Source: Pocillopora damicornis
Lineage: Eukaryota
Assembly (NCBI RefSeq): GCF_003704095.1
Contig: NW_020847499.1
Location: 310,001-374,000, forward strand
Direction of reading: 5' to 3'
Length of the DNA stretch: 64,000 nt
Shown: positions 25,142-25,660 of the stretch, piece after piece
Position numbering within the stretch: the stretch's first letter is position 1
Layout: each line of letters opens with the position of its first letter
Translations under genes and position numbers: made by a program
The notes under the pieces: generated by a model
What the model saw: only the letters and a program-made list of their open reading frames with translations
Told to the model about the DNA's origin: nothing
Databases searched by the model: none

Positions 25142-25660
25142 TTATTCCGCCTGTCGTTTCCCATTCTGACAGAACCAAGAGAGACAGCCTGGTTGGTTTT
25201 GGGGTTCGGCAGGAACTGAGCGAGCGATGCGGAGTTTTCTCATCGGACCAGAATCTTCGACAGTGCTTCTCTTTCCAGTTCGGCAGTCTCTTGTGAGGCA
25301 CGGGATGTCTTCTGGTCCTGGTTTGGGTCCATCCTGTGGTGGGACACCATTGACTGCCCGTCGTTTTCGTCTACATTCCCAACTAATGCAAGGCTCTTCT
25401 TCCTTTGCACCGTATACACTGGATTTCTTATCTGTGGACCCGCCACCTCTGAGGAAGTTTAGAAAGGTATTTTTTTGTAGTAACATGTTTCTCCTGCATT
25501 GCCACGAGATACACGGTCTGCGTTCACTGAGGTCCTTGAGTTCAAGCGCACGCCTTTGAGCCCAATCCCATGGCTTTTCGCTTTCTTTTCCTAACAATTC
25601 TCCAGTGGTAGTCATCAAAATTAAAGTAACGTTAAGGAAAATGAGCGACCAGAATCCCAT
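25142..25660 (-). CDS. Secreted polyprotein precursor B (172 aa) with four C-x4-C cyclic peptides; neuropeptide/toxin-like
   Basis: Signal peptide MGFWSLIFLNVTLILMTTTG, then RR-PCISWQC-RR, EEE-PCISWEC-RRKRR, IPCLTRDCRT-GKR and QPGCLSWFCQN-GKR. An acceptor with a polypyrimidine tract ends at 25671, 10 nt before the ATG. Confidence 0.88.
   Translation of the reverse strand: MGFWSLIFLNVTLILMTTTGELLGKESEKPWDWAQRRALELKDLSERRPCISWQCRRNMLLQKNTFLNFLRGGGSTDKKSSVYGAKEEEPCISWECRRKRRAVNGVPPQDGPKPGPEDIPCLTRDCRTGKRSTVEDSGPMRKLRIARSVPAEPQNQPGCLSWFCQNGKRQAE

Follow-up and report, generated by a model that had tools for sequence, protein, structure and literature searches.

A 64,000-nucleotide stretch of the genome of the coral Pocillopora damicornis (contig NW_020847499.1, positions 310,001 to 374,000; referred to here as the window) carries, on its minus strand, an expressed, single-copy gene for a secreted protein that is most likely the precursor of several tiny disulfide-ring peptides, two of which would be amidated. 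We conclude that the gene probably encodes a peptide-hormone or neuropeptide preprohormone. A first-pass annotation, made from the DNA letters alone, had proposed a multi-copy precursor at this position; our analysis goes beyond that proposal on three points, namely that the peptide units are of two kinds, that one of them (unit D) is conserved most by far, and that a relic of a fifth unit persists in Pocillopora.

The open reading frame (ORF), stop codon included, occupies positions 25142-25660 of the minus strand of the 64-kb window, starts with an ATG in a context of A at −3 and G at +4, and encodes 172 amino acids. Mean Kyte-Doolittle hydropathy is +1.95 for residues 3-17, compared with −1.06 for the remainder of the protein, and the cleavage position of the predicted signal peptide was placed by the −3/−1 rule (small residues at −3 and −1). 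Judged from these features, the N-terminal signal peptide expected of cnidarian preprohormones appears to be present. Beyond the signal segment the protein turns hydrophilic, with abundant Arg, Lys, Glu and Pro, and the mature part is strongly basic (R 11.8%, K 7.9%). It contains four rings of the form C-x4-C (residues 50-55, 91-96, 121-126 and 159-164; units B to E), followed in order by the sites RR, RRKRR, R-T-G-K-R and Q-N-G-K-R. All eight cysteines are members of these four pairs, an arrangement that arose in 14 of 200,000 shuffles of the mature part. With the units, the basic sites and the eight paired cysteines confirmed, the first-pass description of the sequence proved accurate. Two kinds of ring can be distinguished: type I, C-[LI]-[ST/A]-W-x-C, is found in units B, C and E and in an ancestral unit A, and unit D represents the second type. 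The C-terminal Gly that signals amidation is present in units D and E and absent from units B and C; lacking Gly, unit B is predicted to be non-amidated.

The protein resembles no described domain. A Pfam scan with E values up to 10 returned nothing significant, the SVWC match being sub-threshold (E 0.21; 12 bits, with the cut-off at 27). AlphaFold, run on a 19-sequence alignment, gave a mean predicted local distance difference test score (pLDDT) of 49 and a predicted template modelling score (pTM) of 0.19, with three short helices besides the signal peptide (residues 33-39, 53-71 and 94-103). At this very low model confidence, the prediction is consistent with a precursor that has no globular fold. 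The nearest named look-alikes in a protein-language-model comparison, all ten among the matches listed, were neuropeptide precursors (scores 0.87-0.90), drawn from the mutually unrelated NPVF, GnIH, PBAN, FMRFamide-related, orexin, TRH, neurokinin B, QRFP and tachykinin families. Such look-alikes fit the precursor class and do not imply homology; we treat them as a lead only.

A protein search of the 234-Mb assembly returned this gene alone, indicating a single copy. Because the exact protein is recorded in NCBI and UniRef, a gene model already exists, and it bears no functional name; the Pocillopora meandrina copy is entered as ‘unnamed protein product’ or, in UniRef, ‘Secreted protein’. That record belongs to the cluster of a 98% identical protein (P0001), which sits on Tara coral-metagenome scaffolds.

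The stretch is contained in eight studies, and nine of the runs are recorded as RNA. We examined RNA contigs from four runs of three studies (X1, X3, X5 and X12), from oligo-dT or poly(A) libraries. The contigs derive from whole adult colonies or metatranscriptomes and are used here as evidence of presence and splicing. They describe a spliced, polyadenylated minus-strand mRNA of three exons, with the entire coding sequence (CDS) in exon 2 and an AATAAA about 20 bases ahead of the poly(A) site at 23524. Word depth was 140-1058 for exon contigs versus 3-9 for intron contigs of the same runs (X3, X5 and X12). The same two junctions were recovered from a relative's transcript-like mRNA contig (L012; 90% identical in the coding part), which aligns over 28049..27914, jumps to 25670, and enters its third exon from 23811.

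Some transcripts retain the second intron. One X3 record (record 19) runs past the intron 2 donor to 24819; as the stop codon precedes that donor by 10 bases, the read-through form encodes an unaltered protein. The dominant X3 contig (depth 1058) passes the donor and continues to a homopolymer run at about 24820 (24819-25131), and X3 also carries exon 3 contigs with a poly(A) end; two forms of the 3′ untranslated region (UTR) therefore seem to coexist. The proximity of stop codon and donor in Pocillopora (25132-25144; compare L012:663-686) is accompanied by a difference in tail length, in that P0002, P0003 and P0004 extend six or seven codons further and end in K-F-Q or A-F-Q. Being beyond the last cleavage site, this difference should leave the peptides unaffected. 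Within intron 2, a 33-base stretch (23984-24017) is common to many high-depth RNA contigs that diverge on both sides of it, with loose ends in all four runs, and is probably a short repeat of many transcripts.

Homologous proteins numbered 13 in a word-based search and 16 in an exhaustive hidden Markov model (HMM) search of 1.84 billion representative proteins, all of them of the same family; with cluster members included, the family set comprises 93 distinct sequences. Many homologs lie on 1-1.5-kb contigs from sequencing runs, a typical transcript length. A second word-based search, started from the divergent member P0024, returned P0024 alone. The ring size C-x4-C is constant in all 93 distinct sequences. 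Compared across the family, the precursor shows an ancestral layout of five units. In order, the elements are unit A, whose ring precedes A-R-K-R; unit B, with RR or KR behind its ring; the conserved spacer S1, which closes on KK; unit C, whose ring leads into RRKRR; unit D, reading C-L-T-x-D-C-R-T ahead of G-K-R; a spacer marked by the motif L-M-x-K-L-R; and unit E, in which a Trp ring is linked to Gly by a tail one to four residues long. Unit A has been lost from Pocillopora and its nearest relatives, which keep a Cys-less relic of it at 25550-25576. In other lineages unit A, B or C has been deleted or unit D duplicated, and P0024 has three type I units and no unit D. Two tandem copies of the ortholog, 9.3 kb apart and with identical coding sequence (L014:10001-10537 and L014:19319-19855), occur in the species of P0004 and represent either a recent duplication or an assembly artefact.

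The processing signals have been kept through this turnover of units. Internal type I rings are followed by RR or KR in 179 of 224 cases, most of the remainder having A-R-K-R. Copies of unit D carry Gly and a dibasic site in 85/89 cases, and X-Pro or X-Ala stands ahead of the ring in all 89. After the last ring, Gly is followed either by basic residues or by the end of the protein in every one of 81 copies; since the Gly is exposed in some copies by basic residues and in others by the stop codon, a C-terminal amide end appears to be preserved by two genetic means. As patterns in sequence, these three regularities argue for a processed precursor and not a folded protein, the last-ring Gly most strongly.

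Conservation is concentrated in the same elements. Scored as mean pairwise identity per column over 12 non-redundant sequences, units and sites average 0.55 versus 0.30 for spacers (Mann-Whitney p = 6e-7), and unit D is the most conserved element of the protein; scores for the single regions are given in Table 1. The ratio of non-synonymous to synonymous substitution rates (dN/dS), although resting on few substitutions, points the same way: against an 85% identical ortholog it was 0.35 overall, 0.20 for units and sites and 0.46 for the other spacers, and against a 63% ortholog 0.38, 0.19 and 0.47, respectively (small counts throughout). The first-pass annotation had held that conservation was confined to the cleavage-flanked units. 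This stands for units and sites taken together, and fails for spacer S1, which scores 0.42 and is itself flanked by RR and KK. It had also named, as the outcome that would speak against a precursor, spacers conserved as well as the Cys units; overall they are less conserved, S1 excepted, and so the precursor reading survives. The proposed design of several cleavage-flanked, partly amidated units is thus strongly supported by orthologs, selection, copy-number turnover, RNA and the lack of a fold.

Table 1. Features of the ring-peptide gene in the window, from 5′ to 3′ on the minus strand. Conservation is the column score described in the text unless stated otherwise.
Feature	Position	Strand	Description and evidence	Conservation
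Conserved upstream element (candidate)	28166..28227	-	TAATTA core and CCAAT box, close upstream of exon 1	82% identity over 62 bases with L005:1476-1536
Exon 1, 5′ UTR, minimum extent	27915..28113	-	5′ end may reach slightly further upstream; X5, X12 and X3 contigs join 27914/27915 to 25669/25670	
Intron 1, GT..AG	25671..27914	-	2244-base skip, ends CT..AC (cut +1), three runs; letters GTACGT...CCAG	
Exon 2, whole CDS	25132..25670	-	Contigs over 25132-25669 in X3, X5, X12	
CDS	25142..25660	-	172 residues and stop; ORF and letters; exact protein recorded in NCBI/UniRef	
Predicted signal peptide	25601..25660	-	Residues 1-20, cut after T-T-G; hydrophobic core; AlphaFold helix 3-21	M-G-x-W start kept in orthologs
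Relic of ancestral unit A	25550..25576	-	K-P-W-D-W-A-Q-R-R, both Cys gone; aligns to intact K-P-C-L-S-W-x-C-A-R-K-R of other lineages	
Unit B (type I)	25490..25522	-	RR, ring peptide P-C-I-S-W-Q-C, RR	0.40; following site 0.58
Spacer S1	25424..25489	-	20 residues and KK, between RR and KK; AlphaFold helix 53-71	0.42
Unit C	25358..25402	-	Acidic run, ring peptide P-C-I-S-W-E-C, furin-type RRKRR	0.50; RRKRR 0.67, invariant in 14-sequence alignment
Spacer S2				0.17
Unit D (type II), predicted amidated	25268..25312	-	E-D-I-P, ring C-L-T-R-D-C, tail R-T, G-K-R	0.73; GKR 0.89
Spacer S3	25196..25267	-	Contains conserved L-M-x-K-L-R	0.31 overall; R144 nearly invariant
Unit E (type I ring), predicted amidated tail	25154..25195	-	Q-P-G, ring C-L-S-W-F-C, tail Q-N, G-K-R	0.45; Gly exposed in 81/81 last-unit copies
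Intron 2, GT..AG	23810..25131	-	Begins 10 bases past stop codon; 1322-base skip in X1, X5, X12; letters GTAAGG...CACAG	
Exon 3, 3′ UTR	23524..23809	-	Contig cover 23524-23809; T run is a loose end at 23524 in X3	

The observed gene, mRNA, conservation pattern and conserved processing signals suggest a route from processing to cell type and receptor, which we set out here as a prediction. The signal peptide would direct the precursor into the secretory pathway, and each Cys pair would form a disulfide ring of six residues. Furin/PC-type prohormone convertases would cut at RR, KK, RRKRR and the two GKR sites, a carboxypeptidase would strip the basic residues, and peptidylglycine alpha-amidating monooxygenase would convert the exposed Gly of units D and E to C-terminal amides. 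Trimming of the N-termini may occur at acidic or Asn residues and may also take off X-Pro or X-Ala dipeptides; dipeptides of this kind have been proposed as what aminopeptidases remove from cnidarian neuropeptides. Processing at acidic, Asn, Ser and Gly positions is described for jellyfish precursors (PMC6909153). The predicted products are a ring of the type C-L-T-R-D-C-R-T-amide, with or without a leading I-P; C-L-S-W-F-C-Q-N-amide with an uncertain N-terminal extension; and two non-amidated P-C-I-S-W-x-C peptides. As unit D is the most conserved, its amide is probably the main ligand. A pyroglutamate start had been proposed for the last peptide and finds no support, as the Gln is not conserved and distant orthologs carry RR or KR two to four residues before the ring. 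The ring peptides would be released as signals by neurons or neurosecretory cells, and their receptors would most likely be peptide G-protein-coupled receptors (GPCRs). Amidated peptides with a six-residue ring are already accepted as probable cnidarian neuropeptides in jellyfish (PMC6909153).

Two spacer segments may also take part. Spacer S1, in which R71 is invariant across 19 sequences, could release a 20-residue linear helical peptide; the segment (residues 58-79) is possibly such an extra peptide, or else one with a sorting or chaperoning role. From its sequence, the L-M-x-K-L-R motif of spacer S3 is a possible R-x-x-R or monobasic cleavage site.

Several points weigh against a preprohormone. 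Because the RNA came from whole adult colonies or metatranscriptomes, the transcripts could stem from gland cells, cnidocytes or epithelium. The Gly amidation signal carried by most cnidarian neuropeptides is missing from two of the four units, and the N-terminal ends of all the predicted products are guesses. The protein-language-model scores lie below 0.9, the level at which chance matches become rare. Finally, spacer S1 (0.42) is about level with three of the units, B (0.40) and E (0.45) among them, so that the ring peptides alone leave part of the constraint unexplained.

Two other explanations have to be weighed against the same evidence. The gene could instead serve defence, its secreted product giving rise to venom, antifeedant or antimicrobial peptides that gland cells or cnidocytes would make with the same convertases and that would act on other organisms and not on receptors of the coral itself. 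Toxin and antimicrobial precursors, too, can combine a signal peptide with dibasic sites and tiny disulfide peptides. The mature part is also strongly basic, adult colony libraries give a high depth of RNA contigs, and cnidarian toxin-like peptides and neuropeptides overlap, ShK-like neurosecretory products having been mentioned (PMC12225738). We nevertheless regard a defensive role as unlikely, because the gene is single-copy and under deep purifying selection, with unit D nearly invariant across proteins that are 28-50% identical overall. Venom and antimicrobial families, by comparison, usually expand and evolve fast. Moreover, processing would strip most of the basic residues and leave near-neutral or acidic rings of 7-10 residues, too small and uncharged for typical membrane-active peptides, and no toxin family appeared among the Pfam matches.

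The conservation of spacer S1 and of L-M-x-K-L-R outside the rings, together with the AlphaFold helices at residues 53-71 and 94-103, would also fit a small secreted protein that acts unprocessed, or is cut only at the central RRKRR, its mini-loops and S1 helix serving as binding modules (for example in matrix, adhesion or carrier roles). Short secreted Cys-containing proteins of unknown role are indeed highly expressed in coral larval neurosecretory cells (PMC12225738). We hold such a protein to be distinctly improbable here: AlphaFold gives no globular fold, at very low confidence, basic sites bound every ring, and a conserved Gly exposed by basic residues or by the protein end would be purposeless without amidation. 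Whole units have, in addition, been gained and lost while the order of the remainder was kept, which fits independent cassettes better.

As a preprohormone, the coral protein has its nearest described counterpart in the cyclic FRamides of Scyphozoa and Cubozoa (Tcy-FRamide, C-x-x-x-M-C-W-F-R-amide; PMC6909153). Both have a C-x4-C ring in multiple copies, a short amidated tail, Gly-basic sites after the copies and acidic, Asn, Ser or Gly residues ahead of them (PMC6909153). The ring and tail sequences are unrelated, however; the coral precursor mixes two ring types, and half of its units stop at the second Cys without amidation. Neither the M before the second Cys nor the W-F-R tail of the cyclic FRamide consensus occurs in any of the 93 family sequences. 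The cyclic FRamide family is reported to be absent from Octocorallia and Staurozoa (PMC6909153).

Oxytocin and vasopressin share the six-residue C-x4-C disulfide ring, the short tail and the G-K-R. In contrast to them, the coral precursor lacks a neurophysin domain (Pfam Hormone_5), an Asn at ring position 5 and a Pro-x-Gly tail, and its rings are several, the first at residue 50, whereas the single oxytocin/vasopressin ring lies directly past the signal peptide. Membership of that family was rejected, as neurophysin is absent and the consensus C-x-x-x-N-C-P-x-G-amide does not fit; the earlier caution in treating the resemblance as an analogy was well placed, with neither neurophysin nor any other Pfam domain matched. 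Urotensin II has a Trp-containing C-x4-C ring with acidic residues ahead. Like precursors of the urotensin II/somatostatin type, the coral protein places a ring peptide at its extreme C-terminus; unlike them, it has Trp at another ring position, no F-W-K core, an amidated tail (as predicted) and several units, and the Pfam scan gave no match to a urotensin or somatostatin family.

Amongst anthozoans, the GLWamide, Antho-RFamide and GPRGamide precursors (PMC7523074) share with this protein a signal peptide, repeats bounded by basic residues and Gly signals, as well as acidic or X-Pro N-terminal processing and a species-variable copy number (PMC7523074). Those peptides are linear and occur in up to 50 copies, whereas the coral family has three to six disulfide-ring units of two kinds and conserved non-ring segments. 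A survey of 20 hexacoral and ceriantharian species, by the group that reported the cyclic FRamides, assigned seven families to Scleractinia, and reported linear families only (PMC7523074); the words ‘cyclic’ and ‘cysteine’ are absent from its text and the ring motifs from its supplements. Nor do the ring motifs occur in the 55 supplements of the Nematostella library and deorphanisation paper or in the supplements of the coral larva atlas, and full-text literature searches by motif found no published description of the family. With the nearest system unrelated in sequence and the motifs absent from the literature searched, we class the gene as a member of an undescribed family of coral ring-peptide preprohormones. 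There is a slim chance that these are the first disulfide-ring neuropeptides of hexacorals and the anthozoan counterpart of the medusozoan six-ring amidated peptides, with an origin in the cnidarian ancestor that is perhaps shared with bilaterian six-ring hormones.

The sequence just 5′ of exon 1 is also conserved. In L005 the matching element stands 3.5 kb upstream of a distant ortholog (protein identity 44-49%), and the window contains a 26-base core of the element a single time, with 0 occurrences expected. Searches within 10 kb of three other orthologs (L009, L010 and L014) did not find the element. On this sequence evidence, 28166-28227 is a candidate promoter element.

Other ring-peptide candidates were seen in the window and elsewhere in the genome. 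At 33473-33688 on the minus strand, 5 kb upstream of exon 1 of the ring-peptide gene and on the same strand, a 71-residue ORF combines a signal peptide and an RR site with the C-x4-C ring S-P-C-S-S-G-G-C-S-F and a tail that is polybasic. A further minus-strand ORF (62906-63292) encodes a C-x3-C ring that carries an amidation signal (E-P-C-F-P-L-C-F-P-D-Y-G-K-R) and, behind it, a segment that is basic and amphipathic. Both were considered and rejected as relatives of the 172-residue protein, the former showing no detectable homology (E 1.0) and the latter not being homologous (E 0.14); the window thus holds three unrelated candidate ring-peptide precursors. Linked copies of the two ORFs were not found beside orthologs of the gene. 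Across the genome, a degenerate DNA pattern of a type I ring plus two basic residues gave 33 matches, versus 18 for the reversed control, and three of the 33 were the ring-peptide gene itself. No paralogs were accepted among the others: the three best were open segments of 32-47 residues without a start codon or signal peptide, and were taken as chance. The 47-residue segment (L017; G000:C2181:48335-48357) contains S-P-C-I-S-W-L-C-K-R, which matches a type I unit perfectly, down to the Pro and KR. Neither a start codon nor a signal peptide lies close to this segment, which is either a chance match or an exon of an unannotated paralog.

Few signalling peptides are known from reef-building corals, and the gene described here is a conserved, expressed, single-copy candidate for a source of ring peptides. 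The family illustrates both the gain and loss of peptide cassettes within a precursor and the maintenance under selection of an amidation signal by two genetic routes. As unit D is nearly invariant, one peptide is likely to be active across many coral species. Short ring peptides are easy to synthesize, and could be tested directly on coral GPCRs and for effects on polyp contraction, spawning and larval settlement.
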